Assembly (NCBI GenBank): GCA_037379345.1
Contig: CM074517.1
Coordinates: 24,614,001-24,678,000 of the forward strand
Length of the DNA: 64,000 bases
Source of the DNA: Perna viridis
Lineage: Eukaryota
Direction of reading: 5' to 3'
In this document: positions 1-62,323 of the stretch, piece by piece
Layout: each line of letters starts with the position of its first letter
Position numbering within the stretch: the first letter of the stretch is position 1
Made by a program: the position numbers and the translations under genes
The notes under the pieces: generated by a model
Told to the model about the DNA's origin: nothing
Database searches by the model: none
Seen by the model: only the letters and a program-made list of their open reading frames with translations

Positions 1-311
1 GGTTATATTATGCAGATTGTATCATTCAATAATACATCAATATCCTATTAAAATGCAATTAAATAAGTAAACAAAATACAGTTTGGCGTTAAGGGCAGTA
101 CACCAATGCTTCCGATATACATGGAACTGTAATCGATCAATACACATATTTCATTACAATCAATGCATAAATTCATAATTCTGGGCCTCTGTCGCCGAGT
201 CTTTGTCTAAAAGTGTACAGAGAAAGAACATTCATTGTGTACCTTAGGTAAAGGTAGCAAGGAATGAAATTTATATACCATTATAATGAATTCATCTTTT
301 GAGATACTAAC

Positions 312-392
312 CAGTTGTAGTGCTTATTGGTAACCTGGTTGTTGTATGTTCCATGGTAGAAAGTGTTGTGGACTGTGGACTTGTCGGATACA
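312..392 (-). CDS. Thr-rich linker exon (YPTSPQSTTLSTMEHTTTRLPISTTT)
   Basis: 81 nt, CAG acceptor, GTTAGT donor, phase 1-1. Confidence 0.75.
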
Positions 393-3300
393 CTGTGAAA
401 AAAAATGAACAAATGACTGTGGTCAGATCAGTACATAGACCTACTTAAAGAAAATGCAATTTTCTATTTTTTTTTATTTGTCATTCTGAAAGGATTCGCC
501 GATAATTATCTGTCATTATGCTTAATGAAATGATGAGCAAACTCTTAAACTGGATTTCGTGAAAGATGTTAAAAGACATTGCATATGCGAGCTTAACTCA
601 TTTGAATTTTAAAAAAAAACGGACTACCCAACTTCATTACATCCAAAACCAAGTTTTAATAAAGCAAATCCATTAATAAATGTTGTTCAACCTTAATATA
701 ACATTTCATACATATTGCCGTAAAAACATATTTTCCTTGAACAGATTTGCGAGAGGCTGGATTTACAACATTGGATACACTAGGTTTTTTAAGCAGTAAT
801 TTGTTGACAGAGTATTCACTTTAGACACTGATGTTTATTAATGTTGATTATAGATCCACCTATCTTTAATTAAGGTAAGACGGAAAATACGAGATTGTCA
901 AAAGAAAAAAAAAAGAGAAGAAACAAACAAGAAAAAGTCTCCCTTAAAAGTTCCAACATTGTTCAGATTTTGTTGGTGTAATATTTTTAATGTGTAATGT
1001 TTCTTTAAAAGTTAGTAACGCATTTTGAAATAGTCTTTTATTTGAAATAAGACGGATGACCTAGGGTAAGGAACATAACTCTTAAAATCAGCGATATTTT
1101 TGTATCATATTCAATTTCACCAAAACCTATCAAGCTTTCGTATGAAACAAAATGAAATCAGTCCTTGTTACCTTGATGTTTACACGAGATTGATATATAA
1201 TGTTGAATACAAACGTTCTAATGATTTGTAAGAATTGTGTCGCTTGCCCTACCTCCTGAAACTCATCCCTTGTCCGCATCCGTTATACCCCACCCCCCCC
1301 CAAACCCCCGCTATGCGTTTCCTTTTTTATTTAGTTCCGAACTGATTTTTTATTATCAAATTAATCCTCTTATTAACAAATCGTACCATAGGTCGTTCCA
1401 GCTGAAGTTTTCAATGTGGTACCAGAAGCTGCAATCATAAATGTATCATACTTTATATATACATATCACCGTTTTTAAAAGGGTATTAGGAACACTAACG
1501 CATTCAAACGACGGCTAGACAAATACGGGAGTGATTTTCCAATGATGTAAGATTTTATTATGGACTTTAACGTTTACAGCGACAGCAGCGCATTTTAGCG
1601 ATAAAGAAAAAGAGTCGACTATAGGAGTTGAGAAACATCAAAAGGTAAAAAAATGGAACTTTTTTTCCTTATATTTCAGTTACTTTTAAAATGTTCAATT
1701 TGGCAATGAAATAAAAACGATACAAATTTTTAAATATCTATTATTTGTTGTTATTGATATATTGAACTCTAGCTATACAGTTAATTCTAGACTTATTACA
1801 TAAATATACTACATTTCAAAAATTTTAAAAAAATATTGGACTTACTTGGAGTCTTTTCACAGACTTTAATCTTCAAGTTCTTTACCGACGGTACGACGTT
1901 GCCATCAGTAGGAGTAACATAGATTTCCACTCTATCACCAGGAACTGTCCCTTTAGCAATATCTTGGACGTCTACAGTAATTTGTTCATTTGGTTCAACC
2001 TAGTGAAAAAGTATTGTTATTTAATAGCTTCCTCACACAATTTATGAGCACAAAGTGAATGTGGTTCATTGCATTTTTTAGAATATTGGAATAAATTTGC
2101 ATACAAGAAAAATGATATTGTTCACTGTCTTTTTTTTTCAAAGAAAAAATATCTGAAAACCTATTCCATCAACAAAAAGAGAAACAGGAATGAAAATTGC
2201 ACCTACATTTATTGGTTCATCAAAAACAACATCGTCATCAACAGTAATTTTAATTCGAATCTCTTCCACATTTTCTGGCTCCAGTGAGACTTCCATGACT
2301 GGATAAGTCTCAGGAACTGTCAAAGTGACTGACGGGGTATTATCTAATTGTTGTGGCTTCCATCCATCAGGTGTCATTGCATCAAGAGCATCATCGGGGT
2401 TACTAGAGCTAAATGCTTCAAAACCAGGCATATCTGATAAATCTGATACCTCATCTATTGGGCATACTGGATATCCTGTAATTACGTTAAAATATTTTTA
2501 AAAAATATGAGGTAAGGTTTGCTCTAAGGTACAGTAGACCTAAGTGAAAACAATAGACTACAATGTTAAGCCATCTAGCGGATTTGCCTTTATAAAACGA
2601 TACTGGATAGTGCATCCAAACCTTTAAACAATAAAAGTCACAATTAAGTGCCAACAGGTGTCTGGTGAATAAAAGAGAGCAGTTACTTATTATGGGATTC
2701 TATATGTTATAAAAAATGTTCAACTCTATCAAGGTTTTAACCAACTAGTATAGATGAGATATATATGTTAAGGCTGTTTTATTAGCAAAATGAACTTAAA
2801 GAAGATGGACAAATTGATCATGAACTTTCATGAAGTGTTTCTGTTTTCTTTTTGTTTAATTATTTTTGTTTATTCTGGTTTTTTTTTTTGGAAGTCGGCA
2901 AAGTAAGACAGAACTTTGAAATAAATTACAGAAGTGACGTATGTCCTCCGCTCACTGGATCCGCTCATGTTGTATATTTGATGTCCAAATTAGGAATTCA
3001 CATTTTGCCAAAAGGGTACATTTTAATTTTAAAGAAATCACTTGTAGGTGTATAGTACCTTACTTACAAATCACTTGTAGGTGTATAATACCTTACTTAC
3101 AAATCACTTGTAGGTGTATAGTACCTTACTTACAAATCACTTGTAGGTGTATAGTACCTTACTAACAAATCACTTGTAGGTGTATAGTACCTTACTTACA
3201 AATCACTTGTAGGTGTATAATACCTTACTTACAAATCACTTGTAGGTGTATATACCTTACTTAATCTCGATGAACACTTTTATGGTTTTAGTAAAGACAG

Positions 3301-6300
3301 TCAATTGGCACTACATAATGTTTTGTAACGTTCCTTGGCTTTAAAGTAAAATTTTCATCAATATTTATTTTTGTAAATAAAAGTAAACAGATGTATTAAG
3401 TTGTCAAGTACTATTTAGAACTGTATTTAGATAGGTTTCAATATGGTGTTAAGAAGACAGAAAACAAAGGAATCTGAGCAGTAATCAAATGTGTCACCTT
3501 TGACCTTACAGGTTAGAAATTTACACATTATTTTGGTAATGTAGCAGCTGATGCAATCAAATCTTGTCTATTCAATTGTATAAGACATGAAATACTTTGA
3601 TAAAACCAATTAATAGATATAGATATTCGCATCAGATGGATTATAAAAATTACAAATAACGCTATTAAATACTTGTACAATTCTTACCAGTTGTAGTTGG
3701 AGGAGTCGTAGATAAAGTGACAGATGTTGATGGCGTCGTCTCACTGACGGTAAAAGGGGGAGTCTCTGTTACTGTGAACCCTGGGGCCGTCGTTGTTACT
3801 TCTACAGTTTAAAATAATAATCAAAGACATAACATAGATAAGAATAACTAGTAGAAAAAGTGTACGGCATTAATTGAAATAAAGTATTTCCGTTTGATAA
3901 ACGGATACAGAACAATCATATCATAATGACCAAAAAAAAAACAAACGTTAATTTAAAGAACGAAAATACGTTAATGTTGTTGATTGAATTTGAATTATGA
4001 AGTATCACAAAGGAACCCTGAGTGATTGCAAAACTCTTTTTTTCAAATCCTTTTCATATGACTTCTGTAAGTTAGGACCGAATCTAATTCGTTCCATGAG
4101 ATTAGCAAATGGGTGCTTCATGTAATGAGATGTATCGTCAAATTTTGTTGTCTCTACCAATGTGAATTTCCTACCACTGAAATCCGTCTTAATTTGAATT
4201 ACTTTTAAAAGGTCTGCAATACCTGGCAATATATGATTACCTGGTGTTATTGTAGTCGGTGATGTTGATGGCGGTTGAATTGTTGTTGATGCTGTAGTAC
4301 TACCTGTGGAACTTACTGAAACATAATTAAGAAAACATTACCTTTGTCCAACGATTCATTATTGGGTAAACATCTGAGAATATGCAAGCTTTTGTCGGAA
4401 ATATGCAAGCTTTGATATGTTTCGTCCCTTTTCAAATCTGAAGTTTTATATTTTTTATGAATCATTAACTTACAAATACAACCTGGGAATTTTTCGCAGA
4501 ATTTCATTTTCCAGTTAAAAAAAAAACAGGTTTTTCATGTTGTGAAATAGATACAGATCAATTGTCATTTGTAAAGTTCTTAGTTATGATAACTATACAA
4601 AATTAACCAAATGATATCAATAAATGTCAAGTATAGTTAACAAATTTTAACAGGAAGATTATTTAAATATCTTAAATCTTAAACAAGAGTTGTTGCAGTT
4701 GTTGATGTGGATGGAGGTTGAGCTGTTGGTGAAACGGTTGTTGATGCTGTGGTACTAACTATGAAATATAAGTGAGAAAACATCATCGTTTATCCAAAGG
4801 TTGACCACTGGGTAATCAATGATCAGAGTTTCCACCTGAGAACATAAAAGGTTTTGTCGGAAATATACAAGCTTGAATATTCTCCCAGTTTTTTCACATC
4901 TGCATTTTTCTGTTTTTTTTCCATTATTATTAAATAAAATGGTAAAGATATTGAATATGGCCCCTGTTCGAATTAACTATCACATATTACCTGGGAATTT
5001 TTCACAGACTTTTATCTTCAGGTTTTTAACAACAGGTGTTTCATAATCTAATGCTGGAGTGACATAGATTTCGATCCTGTCACCAGGAACAAGACCCTTC
5101 ACAATATCTTGGAGATCTTCCTCAACAGATCCATCTGGTTTCATCTGTAGATAAGAAAGAACACAAGCATATGAGTAGAACAAACCAATGAAGATATAAA
5201 TTTAAAGCTAAGTGTATACAAACATATATCAAATGAAATAAATTATACACTGTTGAAATAACTTCCACATTTCAATTTTCGTAATAAGGACTATAAACAA
5301 TAAAAGGTGTCATGGAACTACTTACATCAATTGGTTCATCCAAAATTTCTTCGTTTCCGTTTGTGACCCTGATGCGGACACTTTCTACATTCTCTGTATC
5401 AAACACCACATCCATTATAGGATAAGTGTCTGGAAGTGAGATGCCAACGAACGGTTGGTTGTCTCTATTTGATGGTTTCCATCCGTCAGGGGTCATGACA
5501 TCTGCAGCACCGTTTACATTAGAGGAACTTATGGGTTCCATTCTTGGTATATCTGAGACGTCAGTAGCATCTTCTTCATTACAAACTGGATACGCTGAAA
5601 TAAAGTCAATGTTTTATTATTCATTTCAAATGAAAAAAAATATAGCGGAAATACTGCGAAGGCATGTCTGTATACGAACAGTAGTAATTGTAGGCAAATC
5701 ATGCTCAATTTTTCATGAAAAAAAGAATCTGTCTTGCAAATAAATTAACCCAGAAAAAAACAAAAACATTTAAAAAGTATAAGAGTTCCTTGTCATTGTT
5801 GATACAGGAACGATTTGATCAGGTTATTGCACGAATAGCAGATATGTTATCAACTTTTCCTATTGGAATAAATGATCATCAATTCTATAATTAGTTCAGG
5901 ACAAAATAAAAAGTGAAAGTAATCACATATACAAACTAACCAGTAGTTGTTCCGGTAACTTCAGTAGCTGTTACTTCTGAAGTTGGTGTTGTCATAGAGG
6001 TATGTGAAGACATTCCTGTTGTGGTTGGTGTTTCACTGGTAGAAGGTGTAGTCGCTTTAGGAGCAGTTGTAGTCTCTGCAAATAATAACAGATAATCAAC
6101 ATTTTTCTTTATACAGGAGTTAATTTACTCAGTTCGTTTAAACACAGATATCAATATCATAGCTAGTGTACACCATAACATGAACTTTGTACGATAGAAA
6201 TATTGTTTTGTGATTTACATTTAAACAGGATACAGATAAATGGTCATTTGTATAGTTCTTAGTTATGATAACTATACAAAGTTAACCAAATGATATCAAT

Positions 6301-9300
6301 AAATGTCAAGTATAGTTAACAAATTTTAAAAGGAAGACTATTTAAATATATTAAATCTTAAACAAGACCTGTACCTTTCAGCTTTTTACACACTTTCACT
6401 TTGAGATTGCTGACTTCTGGAACCAAGTCATCTGATTCGGGAATAGGAAAGATTTCCACCTTGTCTCCAGGTACAACATTTCCATTCTCATCTGGCAAAT
6501 TAACATCAACTGTGCCATCAGGGGTCATCTAGGTTTAAGAAAAAGTTTATAAGTCATATAAGAAATTTCTATAATGCTTTAGTACGGCATAAAACTTTTT
6601 ATTTCCCATCAGCATTTTTCAAACTGTTCAAGATTAAGTATATGATCAAACAAAGTAATACCATGTAAAATATTCTTACAAACAAGGTCAAACAAATTTA
6701 AGACTATACTTTACCTCAACAGGTTCCTCAAAAACTACATCATCCCCATCCGTCACTTTAATGACAAATTTCTTTACATTTTTAGTTTCTGCTGTTACGT
6801 CCATGACAGATTCTGGCTCATCGAAGGTCACTGTAATGACTGGATTATCATCGTCTGGTTCTGGTTTCCATCCTTCGGGTGACATGACATCATCTGTATC
6901 TTCTGGATTACTGGAAGTTGTTACTTCACTGTTTGGTACTTCTGATGACTCAATTTCATCCTCAATTGGACACACAACTAAAATGAAAATAAGAAAACGT
7001 TGTTTTGTAGGGAAAAAGCCTTCTTTCGAAATCTACACTAGTTTAACTATCCAACGTGAAACACTTACAGGTATTAAAGGTACAATTAATGAGAACCGTA
7101 CTGTTAAATGCCTCCAAACTGTAATGTCAGATTACCATAGAACTTTGTTTTAAATTTGATTTAAATGTTTGGGATACAAAAAGACCTGTACGAAAAAATA
7201 ATGCCTGGTGATATATAATTACCTGGTGTTATTGGAGTTGTTGGAGTTGTTGATGTTGATGGAGGTTGAGCTGTTGTTGGTGAAACGGTTGTTGATGCTG
7301 TGGTACTAACTGTGAAATATAATTGAGAAAACATCATCGTTTATCCAAAGATTGACCACTGGGTAATCAATGATTAGAGTTTCCACCTGAGAACATAAAA
7401 GGTTTTGTCGGAAATATACAAGCTTGAATATTCTCCCAGTTTTTTCACATCTGCATTTTTCTGTTTTTTTTCTATTATTTTTAAATAAAATAGTAAAGAT
7501 ATTGAATATGGCCCCTGTCCGAATTAACTATCACATATTACCTGGGAATTTTTCACAGACTTTTATCTTCAGGTTTTTAACAACAGGTGTTTCATAATCT
7601 GATGCTGGAGTGACATAGATTTCGATCCTGTCACCAGGAACAAGACCCTTCACAATATCTTGGAGATCTTCCTCAACAGATCCATCTGGTTTCATCTGTA
7701 GATAAGAAAGAACACAAGCATATGAGTAGAACAAACCAATGAAGATATAAATTTAAAGCTAAGTGTATACAAAAATATATCAAATGAAATAAATTATACA
7801 CTGTTGAAATAACTTCCACATTTCAATTTTCGTAATAAGGACTATAAACAATAAAAGGTGTCATGGAACTACTTACATCAATTGGTTCATCCAAAATTTC
7901 TTCGTTTCCGTTTGTGACCCTGATGCGGACACTTTCTACATTCTCTGTATCAAACACCACATCCATTATAGGATAAGTGTCTGGAAGTGAGATGCCAACG
8001 AACGGTTGGTTGTCTCTATTTGATGGTTTCCATCCGTCAGGGGTCATGACATCTGCAGCACCGTTTACATTAGAGGAACTTATGGGTTCCATTCTTGGTA
8101 TATCTGAGACGTCAGTAGCATCTTCTTCATTACAAATTGGATATGCTGAAATAAAGTCAATGTTTTATTATTCATTTCAAATGAAAAAAAATATAGCGGA
8201 AATACTGCGAAGGCATGTCTGTATACGAACAGTAGTAATTGTAGGCAAATATCTAATCATGCTCAATTTTTCATGAAAAAAAGAATCTGTCTTGTAAATA
8301 AATTAACCCAGAAAAAAACAAAAACATTTAAAAAGTATAAGAGTTCCATGTCAATGTTGATACAGGAACGATTTGATCAGGTTATTGCACGAATAGCAGA
8401 TATGTTGTCAACTTTTCCAATTGGAATAAATGATCATCAATTCTATAAATAGTTCAGGACAAAATAAAAAGTGAAAGTAATCACATATACAAACTAACCA
8501 GTAGTTGTTCCGGTAACTTCAGTAGCTGTTACTTCTGAAGTTGGTGTTGTCATAGAGGTATGTGAAGACATTCCTGTTGTGGTTGGTGTTTCACTGGTAG
8601 AAGGTGTAGTCGCTTTAGGGGCAGTTGTAGTCTCTGCAAATAATAACAGATAATCAACATTTTTCTTTATACAGGAGTTAATTTACTCAGTTCGTTTAAA
8701 CACATATATCAATATCATATCTAGTGTACGCCATAACAGAAACTTTGTACGATAGAAATATTGTTTTGTGATTTACATTTAAACACGATACAGATAAATG
8801 GTCATTTGTATAGTTCTTAGTTATGATAACTATACAAAGTTAACCAAATGATATCAATAAATGTCAAGTATAGTTAACAAATTTTAAAAGGAAGACTATT
8901 TAAATATATTAAATCTTAAACAAGACCTGTACCTTTCAGCTTTTTACACACTTTCACTTTGAGATTGCTGACTTCTGGAACCAAGTCATCTGATTCGGGA
9001 ATAGGAAAGATTTCCACCTTGTCTCCAGGTACAACATTTCCATTCTCATCTGGCAAATTAACATCAACTGTGCCATCAGGGTTCATCTAGATTTAAGAAA
9101 AAGTTTATAAGTCATATAAGAAATTTCTATAATGCTTTAGTACGGCATAAAACTTTTTATTTCCCACCAGCATTTTTCAAACTGTTCAAGATTAAGTATA
9201 TGATCAAACAAAGTAATACCATGTAAAATATTCTTACAAACAAGGTCAAACAAATTTAAGACTATACTTTACCTCAACAGGTTCCTCAAAAACTACATCA

Positions 9301-51300: not shown

Positions 51301-54300
51301 TTCGAAAAACAAAGTATACTAACAAATGTACTATTGTGTGTGGGGGGTTATACTTAGTAAAATACCCATTTCAGCTCAAGGGGAATTTCATAGTTTGATC
51401 CTTATTGTAATTATCAATTATTCCGTAGTTCAGTGATGGGGACCTGGTACTGTCAGTAAATGTTTCATCCGGAGTAATCCTGAAGTATTGTATTGGGGAC
51501 AAGATCCTTACTGTGAATGTATCAACAGGTGTGTCATCCTGAAGTACGGTGATTGTAACTGATTCTACATTATCTTCATCCAAGCTGATTGTGTACAGTT
51601 CTGATGTATCATCTTCATCATTCAGTTTGTAGATTAAAGTAGGATTATCATCACTGTTTGATGGGCTCCATCCCTCAGGATTTTGAGAGTCACTTGGTAC
51701 ATCACCAGGAGCATTGGACGATGATTGTACTGAAACATCGGCAGGATCTGATCCATCTAACATAACCTTGGCACATACTAAAAGTACATATATTGAAAAG
51801 GTCAGTGAATGGAACGTTAAGCAACTGTAAGATGACGAAACATTTTAATATGTGAAATATCAAACAAAAGAAGACTTTCGACTTTTGCAATAACTTTATT
51901 GTCTGCGCTCAGTTCCGAGGGTTCAAACATAATGTTCTGATTCAAAACAATTTTGTTCTTCTACTACATTTATTATTTCATGTTTTTTTATGATTCACAA
52001 ATGTTAAAGATGCTTTTTTATAATTATCCTTTCAAAAGTGTGACAAAGGTAAGCATATGTTATGAATTAAACTCACCTGTAGTTTGAGTAGTTGTTTCAC
52101 CTGGGGTAGTTGTAGTTGGAGTTGTTCCGCTTGTTAATGATGACAGTGGAGTAGTTCCGCTTGTTGAAGGAGTTGTACTACTTGGCGCCGTGGTAGTTGG
52201 AGTTGATCCACTTGTTACACTTGTAGATAAGGTTGTTTCACTTGGTATTACACTTGAGGGGGTAGTTACGCTTGGTGCAGTTGTTGGCGGCGTTGTTCCA
52301 CTAGGTGCAGTTGTCGATGATGTTGTTCCACTTGGTGTTGTTGTTGGTTTTGCTGAGGTAGACAACAGAGTTGTTGTCAACAATGTTGTTGTACCTTCAG
52401 AAAATATCATTTGTCCATTTACTTTAAAATCACAAATATCAAACAAAGTTTATTAGCTCAGATATTAATAAGAAAGACTGTAAGTTCTTTATCGTCAAAG
52501 TGTCAGTCTCTCTGAATATTAGACACAAACATGGACAGAAAACAAAATAAAACTTTTAATTTTTGGTAGAAAGGATTAAAGTACTACAAATGAACCATTA
52601 AGGACAGTGAATACTACAGAAATTGAAAATTTTAATATTTTGTTGAAATATTTTCACCATTAATTAATAGGGATAGAGACCAAATGCAGTGTTTCAGTAC
52701 AAACCTTTATGGATGAAGATAAAGTAACTAATTAGTAATCAAGGGAACCAAGGTTGTAGAGGTAATCAAAAGAATGTAATCCAGGGACAAAGACCAGACA
52801 TGGAAAACAGACATACACAACAAAGAACAGAAAGTAACTAAAATCATACATACAAAGTAACAAAAGTAAATGAGGAACTCGGACTCCACTAAAAACTGAG
52901 AGCATGGACCAGATGCACCGGTAGGGTAAGCGTCCTCTGCTTTTCTAAAAAACCCCACCGAGTTGCTCATAAAAAGTCAAGTCCGGGGTAGACAAACGAG
53001 GAAAGGAAAACTATGACCCGTTGAATAAATCAGTTTTCATGGTGCTGATTGATACACAATAACGATCCACGAGTTCATGATGACGACCATAAAACTTCTG
53101 TAGTGATGACTTCAATCTTGTAGCAACATAACCCTGTTCCAGAAGCCTATTTGTTCTATGAGTTCAAGCGCGATACAAAAAGTGTGTATAGTTTCGGCAA
53201 GCTCTGGCATAACGTATGAGTGGTGATATGAACACTCCATACGCAGGAGCCGAAGGGATGTTGCCACAGATGAAAGGAAAGTTGACAATTCTGATTGAAA
53301 AGTCATCACGTTTGTCGTAAAGTTTGGTCAATAGTTTTCTTTACCATCGATTTCTAAGTGTAGGTCAAGATATAAATCTGACTTCACAGTGTCTGTAGTA
53401 TCCTTTATCTCAAGTTATTTTGGGTAGATGCGATGTATCAAATCCCCGAAAGTAGGATTGTTTAAACATAATACGTCATCGATATAGCGGAAACTGAGAT
53501 TGAGGGATCTAGCCAAACGATATTCTTTCTTTCTGATCAGATCAGCTATAAAGTCAGCCTCATAAGAGTAAAGGAATAGGTCAGCAAGAAAAGGAGCACA
53601 ATTTGTTCCCATTGGAATGCCGACCGTTTGTTGAAAAATACGTACAACACATTGGACAAATATGTTATCCTCTGTATAATGGGAAGATGATTTGTAATTA
53701 TTTCTTACAAAGTATGAGGAATCTCTACCAAAAACTACAGCTATAAAGTCAGCCTCATAAGATTGAAGGAAAAGGTCAGCAAGTAAAGGAGCACAATTTG
53801 TTCCCATTGGAATGCCGACCGTTTGTGAGTTTTAAACGTGCGAAAATAGGAACTCAAAATAAGGTGACGAAGAACGAACACTAAGTACCCTAAGGCACTG
53901 TAAACCGTTGGAAATGCCATCAAAGTGTTTTAAGAAACTCTGGAAAAAATTGGGCAGGGGTCCCCGTATGCCCTGCTATTCCAACGGTCTGAGGGGGCAT
54001 TAGCACAGTGCTGATTTGCAAAAAAAAATACAATAAAGTTAAATCATGGCTATCCAACATTTTCAATATCACCATTCATCTCTTCATATCAGAAGACGAT
54101 GCTTATTATATGAACCAATTATCGCTGAAATCAGAGCAAGTATAAAAATTAGAGGGAAAATGGCCGCTCAGGACGATATTCCTTCATCTCCATTCAACTA
54201 AGAAACACCTAGTTTCCTAAAGGAGGAATCTGAGCAACTGGTGAAAATGGTCGTAAGACGGCAGCCATTTTGAGAATGGCCGTCTTGAAAATAATTTCAA

Positions 54301-55406
54301 TACTGCCAGTCAACTTAGAATATAATGTTTATCTTATGCGTATCTTTCATTTTCGTTATTCTCCTATAGTTAAGGAAAACATAGCAAAAAAAACAAAACA
54401 TTTTGATCCATATGTTCTTTTTTACTAACGAAAGCCATGTTTTTTTTGATTGATGAAAAATTTTAAATGTGGAAGTCACCCTAAAAAATATGCCAACAGA
54501 GAGTTGTACACATTAAAAGGACAAAAAAAAATTGTTTCAGGGGCCATAAATCCTACAACAGAGAACAAATCATTTTGAAAATTTCGGCGAAGGTCCGTCT
54601 CTTGGGGGTGAACAATATTACTCTCCATCAGAATTTTGCTAAATTCAACGGCTTCTGAGTTATTTGCAAAAAACTGTATTTCGACCCCTGTTTTATTTCA
54701 ATAACAGAAGTCATGTTTTTTCCCCAATAAAATATCCAAACAGACATTTTGTGCAGAATACCCTACGAAACAGTAACACTAACTTTCATTAAATTCTGTA
54801 CGGTGGATTGAGAAGATTTTTAAACGTGTTAATATCAAAAATTGCAAAAATCATCGAAAAAAGGGCAATTACTCCAACAGGGTTCAACAGGTTTTCACCA
54901 CAATTACATCACAGATAGATCTCATCATGGTGAACATTCTTACCCAAGTAAAAATTTGATTAATTCTAACTGTTTTAGAGATATATGCAAAAAACTGACC
55001 CCAGTGTTCTTTTTTTTAGAAACGGCTGCGATGTATTTTACCAGATCAAAATTCCAAACGGTCCTTTTGTGCAGAATACTCTAAGGAACAACCATGTAAA
55101 ATGCCATCCAAATCCATTCAGTAGTTTCTGATGAAGAATTATTAACGACGACGGCGACAGACGTCGACAATGACGACGGATGCCAATTGGTGGCAATAGC
55201 TTACATGACCTATGGCTAAAAATGGAAATTTGATGTTTATGGCCATACAATTTAAGGAGTCATGCATAGAAGCAAGTTCATAGGATATTGGAAAGGTATC
55301 TTAATTTGTCATTTTATTATCAAGTATAAATGGTATTAGTTAGGATGACCCATGCTTAATTTAATCATTAATCCCTTTTATTTTAAACAATAAGTGTATC
55401 TTACCT

Positions 55407-55444
<38 letters not shown>

Positions 55445-58400
55445 TATGATAACTTACCTACAGGTTCAAAACATGCTTTGATTACAACATTACTAATTGT
55501 TGGCACCTGTTTTTCATCTTCAGGTTCGATGTTTAATACAATTTTGTTGCCAGGTTTTCCTTTTAGATTGATTGGTTCAGTAAAAGCATCCACCTGGCAA
55601 TAAATTACATGTTTACTGAACATACTGTATAACTCTTTTAGGAATGTATCTTATATGTACTGAACAAATCGAAGTATCAAAGCAATGAATACATTTAATT
55701 ATGCGATGAGAGTGATCAAGCGTCGACTTTGAACGATCGGAATGTTAAGCATTTGATAATGGCAGTTAATGTCGATAAAAAACATTTCAAACATTTATTG
55801 TAAGAAAGACAAGCAAGATGCATTAATTTTACAAAAAGCTTACAAAACTTTGTTTATCAGGTGTGAGTTTGAGTTTGTAATTCAAGCGATGGTCCTTTGA
55901 AAATCATGCTAATTGATATATAAAGTACTTGGACGTTTTCTTCCTGTTCTCATCCATACGGTTCATCATGCACAAATCGTATTCTTATATGATTTAAAAT
56001 GTTTTTCCTTCGTAACTGTTAATTACTTTCATGAACCTTTCGTCAACAAGTTTTGTATTTCACCAAGGTAAACTGTAATTGTATATTCTTGTAGTCATAT
56101 ATAAAAATGTTCATTAATGACAGGATGTATCAAAGCAAGAACGTTTTTTACGTGATTCAAACCCTACCTCTTAATGCAAACAGAACGAAAAGAAATCATG
56201 ATAATGAATTACTTACACTAAACGTATCCACAGGTGTGTCATCCTGAAGTACGGTGATGGTCACTGATTCTACGTTTTCTTCATCCAAGCTAATAGTGTA
56301 CAGTTCTGATGTATCATCTTCATCATTCAGTTTAAAAATTAAGGTAGGATTTTCATCACCGTCTGATGGACTCCATCCCACAGGTTTTTGAGAGTCACTT
56401 GGTTCATCGCCAGGAGCATTGGACGAGGACTGTACTGTTACATCGGCTGGATCTGATCCATCTAGCATTACTTTAGCACATACTAAAATAATTCATTTCA
56501 TTGTTTCAATATGTCCTCATATGCAAGTTCAAGCTAGGATTTTTTTTGCTAGACTTCAAGAGACACAACAAATACGACTTTTTCAGTCTTTATATTGTCA
56601 GTTTCGTACTCATGGTATGATTAAAATGTAAACTTTTTTTTCAAATAATGGAATGGTTTTCCTTTCATGCAAGAGCGCGTTATTATATAAACAATTAAAT
56701 GATCAAATAAAGTCGTTGTAAAACACTTACATCTAGGCAAAGGTACTGAAATGAATCTAAATGAGATACTTGATATTTTCTTTTCTATCTACTCCTTGAA
56801 TGAAATATCATTGTTTTAACATGAACATTCTTCTTTTTTGTTTTGGAATGAGTTTATATTAATTGTTTTTGATATATGTATACCTGTTGTTGGCGTGGTT
56901 GTTTCACTCGGTGTAGATGTAGTTGGGGTCGTTTGGCTTGCTGCAGTTGTAGATGGAGTTGTTCCGCTTGGAACACCTGTAGAAGGAGTTGTGCTACTTG
57001 GTGCAGTAGTAGATGGGGTTGATCTACTTGTGATGCTAACAGATAAAGTTGTTTCACTTGGTATAACACTTGAAGGGGTTGTTTGGCTTGGTGCAGTTGT
57101 AGAAGGCGTTGTTCCACTTGGTGAAGTTAATGGAGTTGTTCTGCTTGGTGTTGGTTTGGTTGTGGTAGACATTATTTTTGTTGTCAATAACGTTGTTGTA
57201 CCTAAATTTATCTGACATCTTTTATCATGTTAATAAGTGAGCATTTTAGAATACAGTCCTGAAAGCGAATGCAACCTTTTCCTATATTATTAATACATGT
57301 GTTTTTACATTGGACCAACAATATATTGAAGGTATATAATAGTGATCCAAGGAAGAAAAAAATGGTCCGAGACAAGGCAGGTGACTATTACAGCTATCTT
57401 CCAATGGCCATTGTTACTGACCGAGGGCATATAACTGGTCTATAATGAAGAAAACATATTTTCATACATTTATTAACCAATTTAAATACGATTGTTGGCC
57501 TTATTAGTCAACATGTACATGGTGTTTTAGTAATGACAATATTTTTTTCTAAATACTCAAAATTAAAATGGCAAAATAATTCAGTTTAGTTTACTTCTGT
57601 GTGATGTTGACAGGAAATTATATTTATAAACTGAATTTGACATCCCTACACTCGGACTGTCTTTATTTACTCAATGATGTACCAAAGCCTATTTTTAGAA
57701 ATAACTGGTTAAATCTATAATGGTCGGCAAGGAAAAAAATGCACAGCATGTTGTTATAAAAACCAAGCATAATAAACCATGAGTGTAAAACATTCACAAA
57801 TTAATCAAGTTACTCTTGAGGAAGTTTTACTGTTTGTAAATTGGACTTTAATGCACATTCGTTGTACACAAAATTTAACTAGGTTACCTAGTCAATCTCC
57901 GGGTATGAATTTAACAATTGACCCATTGATTGTTTTTCCGGACGCGTCAATAAAAAAAAACTAATCGTTCATCAAATTCACTATTCATTATTTGAAAAAA
58001 TAACGAACCTCATAAGATGATAAATTTTATTTACCGATCATGCATTCACTTCATAGCATAACGACAGTTTTTAACTGTTGGTCAAATAATTGGATTCTTA
58101 CCTACAGGTTCAAAGCTGTTTTTAACAGTTTTTTACTGTTTGTCAAATAATTGGATTCTTACCTACAGGTTCAAAGCAAGCTTTAATCACGACATTACTG
58201 ATTGTTGGAACTTGTTGTTCATCTTCAGGTTCAATACCCAGAACAATTTTGTTTCCAGGCAATCCTTTCAAATTGATTGGTTCAGTGAAATCATCGACCT
58301 AGTAATGAAATATATTTCATATTAAATGAACAGAGCATAATCGTTTCCCTCACTAGTGGAGAAAAGAAAAGACAAAAATAAAATTATATCCAACACGATT

Positions 58401-61400
58401 GACGAGGACAGCTACTATTTTCAATGTTAGAAATTACACATCTATACTTATGAGAATTCAAAATCATTCGTAAAACTATTGCTTACTTTAATGATAAAAA
58501 AGAAAGCAAACAAATTGCAAATAATTTGCAAGACACGTCGTCCCCTGTACTACAGTGATGTAGACAAGGTATTAACAGTAACTGTATTGAACGGTGTATC
58601 ATCCTGTACAGTACTGCGATTTGGACCAGGTATTTACAGTAACTGTATCGCAGTTGTGCCATCCTGTAGTACGGTGATATGGACCAGATTTTTACAGTTA
58701 ATGTATTGAACAAGTGTATGTTCCAGTGGTATTATGATTGGCAACAAGTATTTACAGAAAATGTAGCGACAAGTGTTTCATCCTGTACTAAGGTGATTAG
58801 GACTAGGTAGTTAAGATAATTGTATCTTCATGTCTGTATTCCTATTGTACCGTAATTGGGACCAAGAACTAATAGTAAATGTATCAACATGTGCCATTCT
58901 ATAGGACGGTGAATGGGACCAGGTATTTACAGTTAATGTATCAACAGTTGTCATTCTGTAGTACGGTGAATGGTACCAGGTATTAATAGTTGATGTATCA
59001 ACAGGTGTCATTCTGTAGTACGTTGAATAGGACCAGGTATGTACAGTTAATGTATCAACAGGTGTCATTCTGTAGTACGTTGAATAGGACCAGGTATGTA
59101 CAGTTAATGTATCAACAGGTGTCATTCTGTAGTACGGTAAAAGGGACCGGATATGTACATTAAATGAATCAACATGTGTCACTCTGTAGTACAGTGAATG
59201 GGACTAGATGTTTACAGTTAATGTATCAACAGGTGTCATTCTGTAGTACGGTGAAAGGCACCAGGTATTTATAGTTAATATATCAACAGGTGTCATTCTG
59301 TAGTACGGTGAATGGGACCAGGTATTTACAGTTAATGTATCAATAGGTGTCATTCTGAAGCATGGTGAAGGGACCAGGTGTTTACATTAAATGAATCAAC
59401 ATGTGTCATTTTGTAGTATGGTGAATGGACTAGGTATTTACAGTAAATGTATTTATAGTTAATGTATCAACAGGTGTCATTCTGTAGTACGATGAATAGG
59501 ACAAGGTACTTACATAATGTATCACCATGTGTCATTCTGTAGAACGATGAATGGCACCAGTTATTTACATTAAATAAATCAACAGGTGTCATTTTGTAGT
59601 GCGGTAATTGGGACCAGGTACTAACAGTAAGTGTTTTGACATGTGTATTATCTTGTAGTTTGATGACTAAGACAAACCACTTACAGTAAATGTATCAACA
59701 GGTGTGTCATCCTGAAGTACGGTGATAGTAACTGATTCTACATTATCCTCATCAAGGCTGATAGTGTACAGCTCTGATGTATCATCTTCATCATTTAATT
59801 TATAAATCAAAGTAGGATTATCATCACTGTTTGAGGGGCTCCATCCCTCGGGCTTTTGAGAGTCGCTTGGTTCGTCACCGGGAGCATTGGATGACGATTG
59901 TACTGTAACATCCGCAGGATCAGATCCATCTAACATCACCTTGGCACATACTAAAATTAAATTGCTTTCAAAATACAACGTCAATCACACATGAGTTAAA
60001 CTTCTGTGGCCCTTTTTACAAAAAACGTAGTGTAAAATTAGTCGTTAGTTATGACGTCATAGTAAATTAAAGTATTGTGACGTCATAACATACCACTAGT
60101 TTTACTCTTACGATTTTTGTGTGAAAAGGACCACTGTATTAGTATGGATACATAAACAAAATCAATATTAAATAATATCTCATAAATAAAAACTGTCGGT
60201 CTGTGCTATTTGAGAAATATGATAGAAAATTTTATATTTCAACACTTTAGAGCCAACATTCTGACAAAATTGAATATATCTCATCAGTTCGTGTATTTAT
60301 AAGCTAAACACCTTTAAGTAGAAAGTATAGACCATTTAATGCCCCTAAACCTGCGAAATGTAAGAGTATAGTTTTTAGATAAAGATTGTTGAGTTATTAG
60401 GTTTATCAAATAACCCGTCATTGAAATTTGCAGTATTCCAGAATTTAAAACCCCATATACGCTAAGACTTCATTGTACATGGTAGGACGTCTTGGTGCTG
60501 GATATGGCATTCTATTTCGATTTTTGTTTTGTTTTGTTTACTTAAGAAATTAATTACGAAAAGTCCATTTTATCATTGTTTTACCACGGGCTGGCAATTT
60601 ATTTCGCGTTATTTTAAATAACGACATAAATGACCAGTCTGTGGTAAAACAATGATAAAATGAAGTTTCCGTGATTTATTCTGATTCTAATAGGGCTAGG
60701 TTCTTCGTATTTTTGAATAGACACAGCCCATGTGTTTCACGAAATATTGGTCATGAGTTTATCACTTTTTTACCATGACTGTGGTCTAAAGAGCTGTGAA
60801 GTACGCCAAATCAGAATTCTTATATGCAAAATAATTTTAGATATAGATCTTTCTTTGTATTTAATTATAATGACATACACAACGTATACAGCGTACAAAA
60901 ATTGGCAATATTCGTATGATTTGTATTTTTGAATTCAAAACATATTGACGAAATCCTGATTTAACAAACCTGTAGTTGGAGTAGTTGTTTCACTTGGTGT
61001 AGATGTTGTCACAAAGGTTGTTGTACCTAAAAGAATAACATGCCTGTATACTCACATGTCAGTAAAGGGTGTCTAAACTTAATTTGTGTGCAAATAGCTT
61101 TCGATAATGTTTATTAATGTTCAGGTTGTGCCATATGATTCATAGTATAAACCTTGTTGATAAGACTCTATCTATTTTTCGTGCTATTTTAATCTAATGA
61201 AACTTAAATTAAAATAACTTACCTACAGGTTCAAAGCAAGCTTTAATGACAACATTACTAATTGTTGGGGTTAACTGTTCATCTTCAGGTTCTATATCCA
61301 ATACAATTTTGTTACCAGGCAATCCTTTCAGATTGATTGGTTCAGTAAAATCGTCAACCTGGTTATAAAATGTTTCAAATTTAACATTCACAATCATGCA

Positions 61401-61906
61401 ATTTTAGTAACTGCATCATTACTACAGCTTTAACAATTTTAAGGATAAATCGTGTAGAACATCTGATTGTAAAAATCTCTTGCAAATGTTTTTTTTTAAT
61501 AATTTGAAATCCTCTAGCATGATCTATAAATTGATGAATTCATGTTAAAGTAAAATAGATCTATATATTTACACGATTTATTATAATTTGATGTCTAAAA
61601 TCTAATAGACCAGGAACTCACAGTAAATGTAGCGACTTACAGTGAATGTATCCACAGGTGTGTCATCCTGAAGTACGGTGATGGTCACTGATTCTACATT
61701 ATCTTCATCAAGGCTGATTGTGTACAGTTCTGATGTATCATCTTCATCATTCAGTTTATAAATCAATGTAGGATTATCATCACTGTCTGATGGGCTCCAT
61801 CCCTCGGGCTTTTGAGAGTCGCTTGGTTCGTCACCAGGAGCATTGGATGATGACTGTACTGTAACATCCGCAGGGTCTGATCCATCTAACATTACCTTAG
61901 CACATT
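312..61906 (-). CDS. Partial giant multi-exon gene (100 exons, about 5,900 aa in window): mucin-like protein with 33 acidic discoidin/F5-8C-like domains alternating with Thr-rich linkers; continues beyond both window ends
   Basis: Exons have GT/AG ends and consistent phases: domain exon 1 is phase 1-0 (263-269 nt), domain exon 2 is phase 0-1 (136 or 154 nt), linker exons are phase 1-1 and multiples of 3. No stops were seen in the exons translated. The domain family call is by motif inspection only. Confidence 0.88.
1053..1160. mobile_element. Fragment of the same dispersed repeat family as the element at 62046-62323, inverted orientation
   Basis: cctagggtaaggaacataactc...tgtatcatattcaattt...caagct matches the reverse complement of about 62145-62250. 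Confidence 0.55.
1846..2475 (-). CDS. Diverged A-like domain, exons 2207-2475 and 1846-1999
   Basis: YPVCPIDEVSDLSDMPGFEAFSSSNPDDALDAMTPDGWKP...FDEPIN + VEPNEQITVDVQDIAKGTVPGDRVEIYVTPTDGNVVPSVKNLKIKVCEKTP; same 269+154 nt sizes as A domains. Confidence 0.88.
3035..3263. repeat. Intronic 33-bp minisatellite, about 7 copies (aaatcacttgtaggtgtatagtaccttacttac)
   Basis: Direct tandem copies without spacers. Confidence 0.95.
3688..3801 (-). CDS. Thr-rich linker exon (EVTTTAPGFTVTETPPFTVSETTPSTSVTLSTTPPTTT)
   Basis: 114 nt, TAG acceptor, GTAAG donor, phase 1-1. Confidence 0.8.
4241..4303 (-). CDS. Thr-rich linker exon, T1 paralog (GSTTASTTIQPPSTSPTTITP)
   Basis: 63 nt, phase 1-1; a second in-frame CAG acceptor 12 nt upstream would extend it to 4315. 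Confidence 0.75.
4483..4758 (-). pseudogene. Collapsed remnant of an A/B unit: A2 exon end (4483-4538) and a T1 exon lacking its donor (about 4687-4758)
   Basis: Aligns to intact units with two internal deletions. Confidence 0.75.
4991..7309 (-). CDS. A/B unit 1: exons T1 7223-7309, B1 6715-6977, B2 6375-6528, T2 5941-6075, A1 5326-5594, A2 4991-5144
   Basis: 1062 nt = 354 aa per unit. B = VCPIEDEIESSEV...FEEPVE + MTPDGTVDVNLPDENGNVVPGDKVEIFPIPESDDLVPEVSNLKVKVCKKLK. A = YPVCNEEDATDVSDIPRMEP...LDEPID + MKPDGSVEEDLQ...KIKVCEKFP. Confidence 0.88.
7542..9867 (-). CDS. A/B unit 2: exons 9781-9867, 9273-9535, 8933-9086, 8499-8633, 7877-8145, 7542-7695
   Basis: Near-identical to unit 1; splice sites intact. 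Confidence 0.88.
10100..12427 (-). CDS. A/B unit 3: exons 12341-12427, 11833-12095, 11492-11645, 11058-11192, 10435-10703, 10100-10253
   Basis: Near-identical repeat unit. Confidence 0.88.
12659..14985 (-). CDS. A/B unit 4: exons 14899-14985, 14391-14653, 14051-14204, 13617-13751, 12994-13262, 12659-12812
   Basis: Near-identical repeat unit. Confidence 0.88.
15218..17548 (-). CDS. A/B unit 5: exons 17462-17548, 16954-17216, 16612-16765, 16178-16312, 15553-15821, 15218-15371
   Basis: Near-identical repeat unit. Confidence 0.88.
17781..20108 (-). CDS. A/B unit 6: exons 20022-20108, 19514-19776, 19173-19326, 18739-18873, 18116-18384, 17781-17934
   Basis: Near-identical repeat unit. Confidence 0.88.
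20340..22665 (-). CDS. A/B unit 7: exons 22579-22665, 22071-22333, 21731-21884, 21297-21431, 20675-20943, 20340-20493
   Basis: Near-identical repeat unit. Confidence 0.88.
22898..25220 (-). CDS. A/B unit 8: exons 25137-25220, 24630-24892, 24290-24443, 23856-23990, 23233-23501, 22898-23051
   Basis: Homogenised up to about 24880, then switches to the diverged type (CPVED, different intron, 84-nt T1). Confidence 0.88.
25444..28699 (-). CDS. Diverged A/B unit 9: exons 28616-28699, 28109-28371, 27764-27917, 26696-26842, 25771-26039, 25444-25597
   Basis: Same domain-exon sizes and phases as the array; introns diverged. Confidence 0.87.
26957..27594. mobile_element. MITE-like element, about 640 bp with about 131-bp terminal inverted repeats
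   Basis: 26957-27087 is the near-perfect reverse complement of 27463-27594; absent from the paralogous introns of the array; ends in ctata/tatag, so the TSD is ambiguous. Confidence 0.85.
28923..30286 (-). CDS. Diverged A domain plus linker: exons 30140-30286, 29250-29518, 28923-29076
   Basis: 147, 269 and 154 nt exons with GT/AG ends. Confidence 0.87.
30369..30913 (-). mobile_element. 3-prime fragment of a Penelope-like retroelement
   Basis: Colinear with 52734-53293; degenerate IVNFPFICGNIP...RLKSSLQKFYGRHHELVDRY tail. Confidence 0.8.
31185..31252 (-). mobile_element. Possible tRNA-derived SINE remnant
   Basis: Minus-strand GAGTTCGAGTCCC (31231-31243) resembles a Pol III B-box in a GC-rich patch; no A-box or cloverleaf seen. 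Confidence 0.3.
31896..32879 (-). CDS. C unit 1: exons T3 32784-32879, C1 32286-32554, C2 31896-32049
   Basis: YKVCPIEDETEASNVPQMEPVSSTNPGDAPNAMTPDGWTP...FETPVE + VKPDGSFEADLPEINKGEVPGDKVVIVVKPESLDEVPEVSNLVIKVCKKFP; linker ESTTASTVTSPETKVPTTATPSSTPVSTPTTT. Confidence 0.87.
32984..34199 (+). mobile_element. Non-autonomous Helentron-type (HINE-like) element
   Basis: Head aacaggagg...catcgctgacc; three degenerate internal repeats of about 300 bp; (gac/aac)n tract; 3-prime hairpin ending caagtgagctaaaa; interrupts the intron seen uninterrupted in C units 2-8. Confidence 0.75.
34536..35249 (+). mobile_element. Second, 5-prime truncated copy of the HINE-like element
   Basis: Colinear with about 33490-34199; hairpin agcttacttg-acctttcgc-caagtgagct. 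Confidence 0.75.
35618..36952 (-). CDS. C unit 2: exons 36857-36952, 36042-36310, 35618-35771
   Basis: 96, 269 and 154 nt exons. Confidence 0.87.
37423..38767 (-). CDS. C unit 3: exons 38672-38767, 37858-38126, 37423-37576
   Basis: Repeat unit, splice sites intact. Confidence 0.87.
39238..40580 (-). CDS. C unit 4: exons 40485-40580, 39672-39940, 39238-39391
   Basis: Repeat unit. Confidence 0.87.
41027..42371 (-). CDS. C unit 5: exons 42276-42371, 41462-41730, 41027-41180
   Basis: Repeat unit. Confidence 0.87.
42841..44171 (-). CDS. C unit 6: exons 44088-44171 (12-nt in-frame deletion), 43277-43545, 42841-42994
   Basis: Repeat unit with 84-nt linker. Confidence 0.87.
44618..45962 (-). CDS. 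C unit 7: exons 45867-45962, 45054-45322, 44618-44771
   Basis: Repeat unit. Confidence 0.87.
46431..47753 (-). CDS. C unit 8: exons 47670-47753 (12-nt in-frame deletion), 46867-47135, 46431-46584
   Basis: Repeat unit with 84-nt linker. Confidence 0.87.
48200..50064 (-). CDS. C unit 9 plus unique linker: exons 49960-50064, 48635-48903, 48200-48353
   Basis: Linker GTTTYKTTTLLSTTTKATTAPTGTTSATEPTKTTT, 105 nt, phase 1-1. Confidence 0.85.
50659..52394 (-). CDS. D unit 1: exons T5 52077-52394, D1 51512-51777, D2 50659-50794
   Basis: CAKVMLDGSDPADVSVQSSSNAPGD...GWSP...DDTPVDTFT + VDDLTEPINLKGVPGNKIVLDIKPEDEQQAPTISNVVIKACFEPI; 318-nt PTS linker with an AAG acceptor. Confidence 0.83.
52734..53826 (-). 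mobile_element. 5-prime truncated, degenerate Penelope-like retroelement reverse transcriptase
   Basis: QTVGIPMGTNCAPFLADLFLYSYE...FRYIDDVL...IYPK*LEIKDTTDT...YLDLHLEID, then frameshift to TKLYDKRDDF.IRIVNFPFICGNIPSAPAYGVFIS; contains stops and frameshifts. Confidence 0.85.
54350..55220 (+). mobile_element. HINE-like element related to the 33-35 kb copies; 5-prime boundary uncertain (may start near 53.9 kb)
   Basis: Same style of internal repeats (tttcaggggccataa, gcaattactccaaca), (gac)n tract and gcaatagcttacatgacc...gctaaaa end. Confidence 0.6.
55413..55442. repeat. (AC)15 microsatellite
   Basis: Direct reading. Confidence 0.97.
55458..57201 (-). CDS. D unit 2: exons 56884-57201, 56217-56482, 55458-55593
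   Basis: 318, 266 and 136 nt exons; GT/AG ends. Confidence 0.85.
58163..61026 (-). CDS. D unit 3: exons 60970-61026, 59685-59950, 58163-58298
   Basis: 57-nt linker GTTTFVTTSTPSETTTPTT; 266 and 136 nt domain exons. Confidence 0.83.
58545..59660. repeat. 57-bp (57-59) minisatellite, roughly 18-19 copies, homologous to the 3-prime end and donor of exon D1
   Basis: Unit acagttaatgtatcaacaggtgtcattctgtagtacggtgaatgggaccaggtattt versus exon end ttacagtaaatgtatcaacaggtgtgtcatcctgaagtacggtga. Confidence 0.9.
60004..60136. repeat. Imperfect palindrome / small MITE
   Basis: ctgtggcccttttt...ttatgacgtcata versus tgtgacgtcataa...aaaaggaccactg. Confidence 0.75.
60545..60682. repeat. Long, nearly loop-less palindrome
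   Basis: cattttatcattgttttaccac...gttattttaaataac...gtggtaaaacaatgataaaatg. Confidence 0.85.
61223..61906 (-). CDS. D unit 4: exons 61641-61906, 61223-61358
   Basis: 266 and 136 nt exons; phase-1 acceptor implies upstream exons outside the window. Confidence 0.85.
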
Positions 61907-62045
61907 CTAAAAAAGTTATTAATCTAAACAAACACATGCAAATACATTTCAAGCTTCAACAAAACAAATGAGTTCATATTTACAGTTAATATTTTATGTA
62001 ATAGAAGGCAGCCATTTTTTCATTAGTTTAGAATTAGTGATTTAA

Positions 62046-62323
62046 GGAGGTAGACCTAGTTTAGTGACACAACTCTTAAAAAATCATTGGAACGTTTGTA
62101 TTCAGCATTTTACATCAATCTTTTGTAAGCATCAAATTAACTTTTTTCATTTTATGCTGCTTCAAGCTTGAGAGGCTTTCGTAAAATTGAATATGATACA
62201 AACATATCACCGATTTCATGAGTTATGTCCCTTACCCTAGGTCCACCTTCGTATTTTTTTTTTTTTTTTTGGCAATAAACCTAACAATCATCACTTAAAA
62301 CAACTTACCGTAGGTCTACCTAC
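62046..62323. mobile_element. Putative Kolobok-like MITE
   Basis: ttaa|GGAGGTAGACCTA ... TAGGTCTACCTAC|ttat: short TIRs with a TTAA-like target site. Confidence 0.5.

Follow-up and report, generated by a model that had tools for sequence, protein, structure and literature searches.

The window analysed here is a stretch of 64,000 nucleotides of the mussel Perna viridis (GCA_037379345.1, contig CM074517.1, called C7 below, positions 24,614,001-24,678,000), taken from an assembly of 723 Mb in 46 contigs. It represents the central 62 kb of one expressed minus-strand gene at C7:24.59-24.69 Mb. From 5′ to 3′, this gene would comprise giant exons rich in proline, threonine and serine (PTS), 33+1 cassettes that each encode a globular bead, and a SCO-spondin-like tail with TSP1 and TIL domains and a C-terminal cystine knot. 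The bead is a predicted two-cysteine, strongly acidic domain of ~135 amino acids (aa), followed by a PTS spacer that could carry O-glycans. The full protein probably has ~9,000 aa. We are highly confident of the gene structure and of the fold class of the bead, and we consider it fairly probable overall that the product is a secreted mucin-like polymer or matrix cross-linker.

The window is AT-rich (GC content 0.31-0.38) and contains zero N. The GWxP motif occurs in 34 open frames of the minus strand, one of them an overlapping off-frame match, and in none of the plus strand, which leaves 33 exon-A frames. Exon-B frames, recognised by PG[DN][KR][IV]...C, also number 33. Together with ~35 PTS frames they run in the order A-B-linker without a break from position 61955 down to 310. 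A cassette consists of three exons: exon A (~88 aa), exon B (~50 aa) and a PTS spacer exon. The linker exon ends ..ACAG/gt in phase 1, and the next linker begins in phase 1. Exon A is preceded by ag, opens in phase 1 and closes in phase 0 before gtaaac, gtaagt or gtgagt; exon B spans phase 0 to phase 1 and ends ..CCAG/gt. Judged from one unit read at the DNA level and from exon ends in several types, every cassette is in phase 1 at both ends. Stop codons are absent from the exon copies, and the splice sites are canonical. The rough total is 33x88 + 33x50 + ~1,340 linker residues, or ~5,900 aa in ~100 exons. The original prediction, made from the letters of the window, had claimed ~100 exons, ~5,900 aa and at least 33 domains in a strict domain-linker rhythm, and the frame count, the phases and this tally bear it out.

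The positions invariant in all beads are C, S..N, P.GW.P, D..P, NV and I in exon A, and PG, P, P, N, K and C in exon B. They agree with the shared motif C...SS[ST]N...GWxP...PG[DN][KR]...C described in that prediction. Exon A contains 19-23 Asp+Glu versus 1-7 Lys+Arg. At 75% identity the beads form five types in the order AAAA BBBBBBBBB (CD)x9 C E. Identity is 86-100% within types and 29-51% between types. Four subtypes in ordered blocks had been expected. The ordering was found; the number of types is five, two of them take turns along the array instead of occupying blocks of their own, and the last unit forms a separate type.

The RNA evidence comes from runs labelled as the same species, from three studies, which were mapped to positions 1700-7100 of the window. 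Runs of several studies contained about one quarter of the words of this stretch, which is its exon share. The contigs joined positions 1997/2205, 2474/3687, 3801/4241, 5144/5326, 5592/5941, 6075/6375 and 6528/6715, all with CT..AC ends (GT..AG on the minus strand). Within 1700-7100, the contigs were spliced at the predicted exon edges, and every predicted intron was spliced out in contigs of three studies. The gene is transcribed and spliced, and its expression is high in some samples; the word depth reached ~38,000 in run X12 (4991..6979 region). The linker exon 4687-4758 is optional, being included by the joint 4758/4991 and skipped by 4315/4991, which is either alternative splicing or a difference between copies. 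A joint running backward from 6979 to 4687 is the expected repeat-to-repeat junction, placed on the sole copy of the linker within the stretch. A TGT insertion behind position 4723, equal to one extra codon, was seen in the RNA contigs of all three runs.

The features of the array, all on the minus strand, are as follows.

50552..61955, minus: block 1, four cassettes of the 5′-most bead type, from frame order and type clustering.
61605-61955, 59670-59984, 56199-56492 and 51374-51844, minus: exon A frames of block 1.
56819-57229 and 52063-52449, minus: long PTS linker exons of block 1, up to ~130 aa.
31882..48949, minus: block 2, nine cassettes of the second type, period ~1.8 kb.
46867-47136 (exon A), 46435-46584 (exon B) and ~45860-45965 (linker), minus: sample unit of block 2.
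4983..29639, minus: block 3, nineteen cassettes of two alternating types, two-domain unit of 5.1 kb.
6715-6979 (exon A), 6375-6528 (exon B), 5941-6075 (linker), 5326-5592 (exon A) and 4991-5144 (exon B), minus: RNA-verified alternating pair.
4687-4758, 4241-4315 and 3687-3801, minus: three PTS linker exons, from RNA joints.
2205-2474 (exon A) and 1846-1997 (exon B), minus: last cassette within the window, of its own type, with the joint 1997/2205 in contigs of three studies.
310..444, minus: open frame with the final PTS linker exon of the window; the gene runs on into the downstream flank.

The bead was compared with known domains by sequence. Single exons A and B of every type gave zero Pfam matches, F5_F8_type_C (PF00754) included. 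PF00754 also gave no match on the beads of the spliced homologues P0001, P0003, P0038 and P0050, and its genome-wide scan found nothing within the window. In P0029, a distant family member, it scored 22.1 bits, below the cut-off. The Pfam matches REC104, DUF4138 and HutF_N were sub-threshold or spurious, summed over repeats, and were dismissed. PF25850, PF26264 and PF26591 are precomputed on Mytilus californianus models and absent from bead-bearing M. galloprovincialis homologues; they are probably summed weak matches. A newer Pfam model for the bead may exist.

Profiles reached further than single sequences. A word-indexed protein search with exon A returned the genomic open reading frame (ORF) itself as its sole match. 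A profile of six exon-A types, run against 1.84 billion representatives, matched 51 proteins at E<=0.001. The matches included many single-exon ORFs, a protein of the nemertean Tubulanus polymorphus with 7 beads, and the M. californianus "mucin-2-like" protein XP_052090877.1 with 12 beads. The profile reached true discoidin proteins at E ~1e-5, namely the PTS-linked eukaryotic P0036 and bacterial proteins; one of the latter is the fucosidase P0035, whose F5_F8_type_C domain contains the matched stretch. The whole-bead alignment was built from annotated proteins, with the window exons added as separate fragments. With hhalign, the bead family matched a true F5/8 type C alignment with 92.8% probability and an E-value of 3.9e-7; of the 138 columns of the profile, ~92 were aligned, the final strand and terminal Cys among them. 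The reversed control gave 0.1%, and 20 column shuffles gave at most 0.3%. The window exon-A profile matched a canonical discoidin exon of a paralog on contig C11 (PF00754 30.3 bits) at 80.6%.

For structure prediction, the exon-B fragments, which MAFFT had misplaced, were left out of the alignment, and the complete single-bead protein P0038 was folded. The AlphaFold model has eight strands and a mean predicted local distance difference test (pLDDT) score of 70.6, with 72-89 in the core. The top ranks of Foldseek on this model were CBM32, fucosidase C-terminal domains, F5/8C, DOC/APC10 and fucose-binding modules/F-lectin. VIA-align against CBM32 4a42_B gave Z 13.1 and a root-mean-square deviation of 2.5 Å over 117/126 residues, and each of the 50 entries listed (50/50) has the galactose-binding-domain-like fold, discoidin I, DDR1 and neuropilin among them. 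The protein-language-model neighbours of a Mytilus bead were F5/8C clusters, which we take as a lead. The cysteines at both bead ends are invariant; the P0038 model is of low confidence around the N-terminal one. Residues kept across types (C, SSN, GWxP, NV, PG and the terminal C) map to core strands and fold ends, not loops. Like discoidin, F5/8 type C and CBM32 domains, the bead has a predicted jelly-roll fold, cysteines at both ends and an N-terminal 'SS..W.P' region. Unlike them, it is shorter (~130 aa between the cysteines), strongly acidic, and below the Pfam threshold in every case tested. Profile comparison and modelling thus suggest that the bead is a trimmed, acidic, remote discoidin/CBM32 relative beyond the reach of the Pfam model. 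The claim of a discoidin-related, possibly unclassified domain is supported by the lack of a Pfam match, the hhalign result and the P0038 jelly roll together.

The array continues into both flanks. Downstream (L006/L004, minus strand), a 34th, diverged bead was found, with exon A at E 1.6e-6 and a weak exon B. It is followed by six TSP1-type exons, of which the five scanned scored 25.5-45.7 bits with TSP_1, and by two TIL domains (24.7 and 25.5 bits, both over the cut-off) and a putative cystine-knot exon 69% identical to the C-terminal exon of the Mytilus edulis ortholog. The tail and the Mytilus proteins are collinear. Separating the last bead from the first TSP1 exon is the segment L006:7299-7502 (minus, ..FKDNFGYEQID..), which shows 77% identity to M. 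edulis. No Pfam stretch is reported for its equivalent in the Mytilus homologues, and it may be an undescribed module. Upstream (L005), there are three minus-strand PTS frames of 507, 873 and 659 aa (~2,000 aa) with TTGSTGTTAA-type repeats. One of them ends "TTTG", as do most linker exons of the window. At L007:553-583 there is a further exon of the linker type, 30 nt long and flanked by good splice sites. The upstream PTS exons were assigned to the gene because of the shared exon-end motifs and the layout of the ortholog.

The flanks had been suggested as a place to look for a signal peptide and for VWD, TSP1 and cystine-knot domains; TSP1 and a probable cystine knot are there, a signal peptide and VWD were not found. 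No VWD match was obtained on C7 21.5-33.2 Mb in the genome scan, and no N-terminal VWD-C8-TIL assembly within 110 kb upstream, the 5′ end of the gene being undefined. Cys-rich frames were absent from the first 60 kb upstream. A canonical N-terminal discoidin domain, as in P0057 and P0077, was found neither in the window nor in 110 kb upstream. The PTS spacers and the tail of TSP1, TIL and cystine knot are in keeping with the proposed secreted, polymer-like glycoprotein, whichever of mucus, adhesive, shell matrix or egg coat it may form.

The ortholog, judged by sequence, is M. edulis XP_071153702.1 (7,161 aa), an automatic model named "uncharacterized protein". It is collinear with the locus, with ~70% identity in the first bead type, 48-58% in later types, and 65-94% in the tail through the cystine knot. 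The block 1 beads are the closest match to its N-terminal units. The two proteins share an N-terminal PTS region (~900 aa in M. edulis), cassettes of bead plus PTS of the same types, a diverged last bead and the unnamed segment, which in M. edulis is followed by TSP1, TIL, VWC and a cystine knot. They differ in amplification: the M. edulis protein carries the first type ~9 times and the 'last' type several times, against one copy of the latter in the P. viridis window. It also has a second PTS region in mid-protein, and the model is without a signal peptide.

Paralogs were found under the names "mucin-2-like" (M. californianus, M. trossulus) and "SCO-spondin" (M. galloprovincialis, a UniRef name), with the accessions XP_052090877.1, XP_063420437.1 and VDI60313.1. 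These models share the bead family, the PTS spacers and the TSP1/TIL/cystine-knot tail. They differ in that their beads are more distant, and some carry a canonical discoidin domain passing PF00754 (31.8 bits). In the P. viridis genome, a strict exon-A profile gave 33 matches, all in the window. A broader profile found a paralogous array of at least 40 cassettes with a period of ~2.2 kb at C11:26.05-26.25 Mb (L018-L020; 26,044,000-26,270,000). This array has the same three-exon cassette and differs in its more distant beads, the canonical discoidin exons downstream, one of which passes PF00754, and the VWD exons upstream. Neither the canonical discoidin domain nor the VWD domain of the C11 paralog was found at the C7 locus. 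The family is already in public annotation, under automatic names only. The original prediction had recognised no named gene with this architecture; that is true in so far as no characterised protein was found, and it misses the automatic RefSeq models of Mytilus. In the literature, no paper characterising the bead protein was found.

Gel-forming mucins (MUC2, MUC5AC, MUC5B) and VWF offer the nearest plan of construction. In the mucins, PTS regions are interrupted by small globular CysD domains, and chains dimerise through a C-terminal VWC and cystine knot. The locus is similar in its long PTS regions (~35 PTS exons in the window plus the three upstream frames). It differs in the interrupting domain, which appears to be a two-Cys discoidin relative instead of CysD and is present in far more copies, and in that no VWD-C8-TIL was found within 110 kb upstream. 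The building principle of interrupted PTS, a cystine-knot tail and cassette amplification is already known from mucins. The tail of vertebrate SCO-spondin likewise alternates TSP1 and TIL and has a cystine knot at the end. Among giant proteins from outside mussels, vertebrate SCO-spondins match the tail best (28-39% identity), and F5/8 type C is among the Pfam domains precomputed for them. They have no PTS/bead array, and LDL-receptor class A, EMI and VWD domains were not seen among the C7 flank exons scanned, where short exons could be missed. Sea-urchin Nectin also consists of tandem FA58C (discoidin) domains in a secreted adhesive or cohesive glycoprotein, like the bead array, and temporary adhesives repeatedly combine FA58C with vWD, EGF and lectin domains (PMC10057474). 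Nectin differs in having six canonical FA58C domains, no mucin spacers and no TSP1/TIL/cystine-knot tail.

The cassettes appear to have been turned over recently. The 5.1-kb two-bead units are 99.1-99.9% identical and the 1.8-kb units of block 2 96.5-98.8% identical, introns included in both cases, and the amplified cassette types differ between P. viridis and M. edulis. Since the introns are near-identical, the cassettes are in phase 1 at both ends and different types are amplified in M. edulis, the sequences suggest that entire exon-intron cassettes have lately undergone unequal crossing-over or gene conversion. With phase 1 at both ends, unequal crossing-over can add or remove beads and keep the frame intact. 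This would account for the near-identical copies and for the differing copy numbers in M. edulis.

By analogy with mucins, VWF and SCO-spondin, the chain would be secreted with its spacers heavily O-glycosylated, and the cystine knot would dimerise chains. The glycosylated spacers would keep the dozens of beads apart, giving an extended beads-on-a-string polymer. The beads may bind glycans and/or Ca2+ weakly and multivalently and in this way link the molecule to other glycoproteins, particles or surfaces, and the product would be a mucus or adhesive-matrix gel. That the putative function is multivalent, low-affinity binding of glycans and/or Ca2+ to cross-link mucus or an adhesive matrix is plausible, falling a little short of probable. 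A wider proposal treats the bead as a separate lophotrochozoan branch of the discoidin fold, as yet unclassified and seen in mussels and a nemertean; it would serve as a multivalent Ca2+- or glycan-dependent cross-linker, and its copy number, set by rapid turnover of the exon cassettes, would tune a secretion such as feeding mucus or an adhesive. We regard this as speculative and rather unlikely.

Several points weigh against the reading of a secreted, cross-linking bead protein. The Pfam discoidin model does not match the bead. The folded protein P0038 is a homologue ~30% identical to exon A of the window, so the jelly roll obtained by structure prediction and Foldseek belongs to that homologue and not to the window's own A, B, C or D domains. 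The cystine-knot exon scored 20.6 bits with Cys_knot, with the cut-off at 24. The upstream PTS exons and the L007 exon are putative parts of the gene of the window. A signal-peptide search in L005 and L007 gave weak candidates only, in the wrong phase. Because no signal peptide or first exon was found, secretion is deduced from the domain layout. Run X15, with the same species label, had zero reads on 1700-7100, and expression is therefore sample-specific. The beads may bind nothing, as the conserved motifs look structural, and near-identical repeats can be miscounted in an assembly.

The last point leads to the view that the true array is shorter and that its assembly has contributed artefactually to the copy number and the perfect rhythm. 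Units up to 99.9% identical over 5.1 kb are indeed difficult to assemble. However, the window has no N, its copies differ by graded, scattered substitutions and small indels, 16-20 or more beads are likewise present in the models of M. edulis, M. trossulus and M. californianus, and repeat-to-repeat junctions occur in the RNA contigs. We consider such an artefact very improbable. A greater chance, still on the unlikely side, belongs to beads that have no ligand and serve as rigid, protease-resistant spacers or as weak self-association knots setting gel rheology, comparable to CysD of MUC2/MUC5. In favour of this, the residues conserved across types lie in core strands and fold ends, not in loops. 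Typical discoidins are longer than the bead, and the binding loops may have been trimmed. Against ligand-free beads, nearly all structural neighbours are carbohydrate-binding modules, and 34 copies suggest avidity; for these two reasons the multivalent binder is favoured.

Two further alternatives concern the tissue and the material. In one, the protein is an acidic shell-matrix protein whose Asp/Glu-rich beads bind Ca2+ or CaCO3 faces and which the mantle secretes into the shell or periostracum. Many shell-matrix proteins are acidic, the beads are highly acidic, and expression is high yet sample-specific. The acidity is nevertheless dispersed across a folded jelly roll, with no Asp-rich runs, and long PTS regions that can be O-glycosylated, with a tail of TSP1, TIL and cystine knot, characterise mucins and SCO-spondin, not known shell proteins. 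This makes a shell-matrix role improbable. The other alternative, a foot-gland or byssus adhesive or cohesive glycoprotein comparable to the discoidin adhesives of sea urchins and sea stars, seems to us somewhat less improbable, if unlikely. It would agree with the FA58C domains carried by marine temporary adhesives, in tandem in Nectin (PMC10057474). The gene abbreviations of a P. viridis foot study include 'mucin-2-like' and 'SCO-spondin-like' (PMC5435178). These names could not be linked to the C7 gene; the tie to that study is one of names only, and DOPA-type Tyr-rich motifs (DOPA, 3,4-dihydroxyphenylalanine) are absent. The secreted mucin-like cross-linker, with putative glycan- or Ca2+-binding beads, is the reading that we prefer.

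Repeats and neighbouring genes were also recorded. A minisatellite at 58545..59684 (minus), within an intron of a block 1 cassette, repeats the 3′ end of exon A (..TPVDT.TV..), with self-matches of 77-78%. At 53418..53831 (minus) lies an intronic reverse-transcriptase fragment (RVT_1 E 1.2e-5, below the cut-off), a transposable element outside the protein. A reverse-transcriptase family with the GIPMGTNCAP motif occurs in the window at 52700-53930 (minus), in the flank at L008:3365-3994 (plus) and at the C11 paralog at L020:2572-2997 (minus). Short dispersed repeats at 62036-62260 and 63381-63714 recur dozens of times across many contigs with 80-90% identity and resemble short interspersed elements (SINEs) or miniature inverted-repeat transposable elements (MITEs). 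On the opposite strand, a 446-aa open frame with several hydrophobic stretches lies at L008:8614-9951 (plus; C7:24,706,614-24,707,951); it could encode a single-exon membrane receptor and is probably the next gene upstream. The next gene downstream of the cystine-knot exon is marked by an exon at L009:2088-2390 (minus; C7:24,586,088-24,586,390) with the motif GGMENPCLTF, which is typical of M1 aminopeptidases or leukotriene-A4 hydrolase.

Mussel secretions such as feeding mucus, foot and byssus adhesives and shell matrix serve as model systems of wet adhesion and of particle capture. Giant mussel glycoproteins are poorly annotated because repeats break gene models. The locus supplies a clean, RNA-supported structure of one such glycoprotein, and it defines what appears to be a compact two-cysteine discoidin relative missed by current domain libraries. 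It also shows whole-domain cassettes that have been amplified and replaced between related species. If the beads do bind glycans or calcium, the protein would be a natural lectin array on a mucin scaffold.

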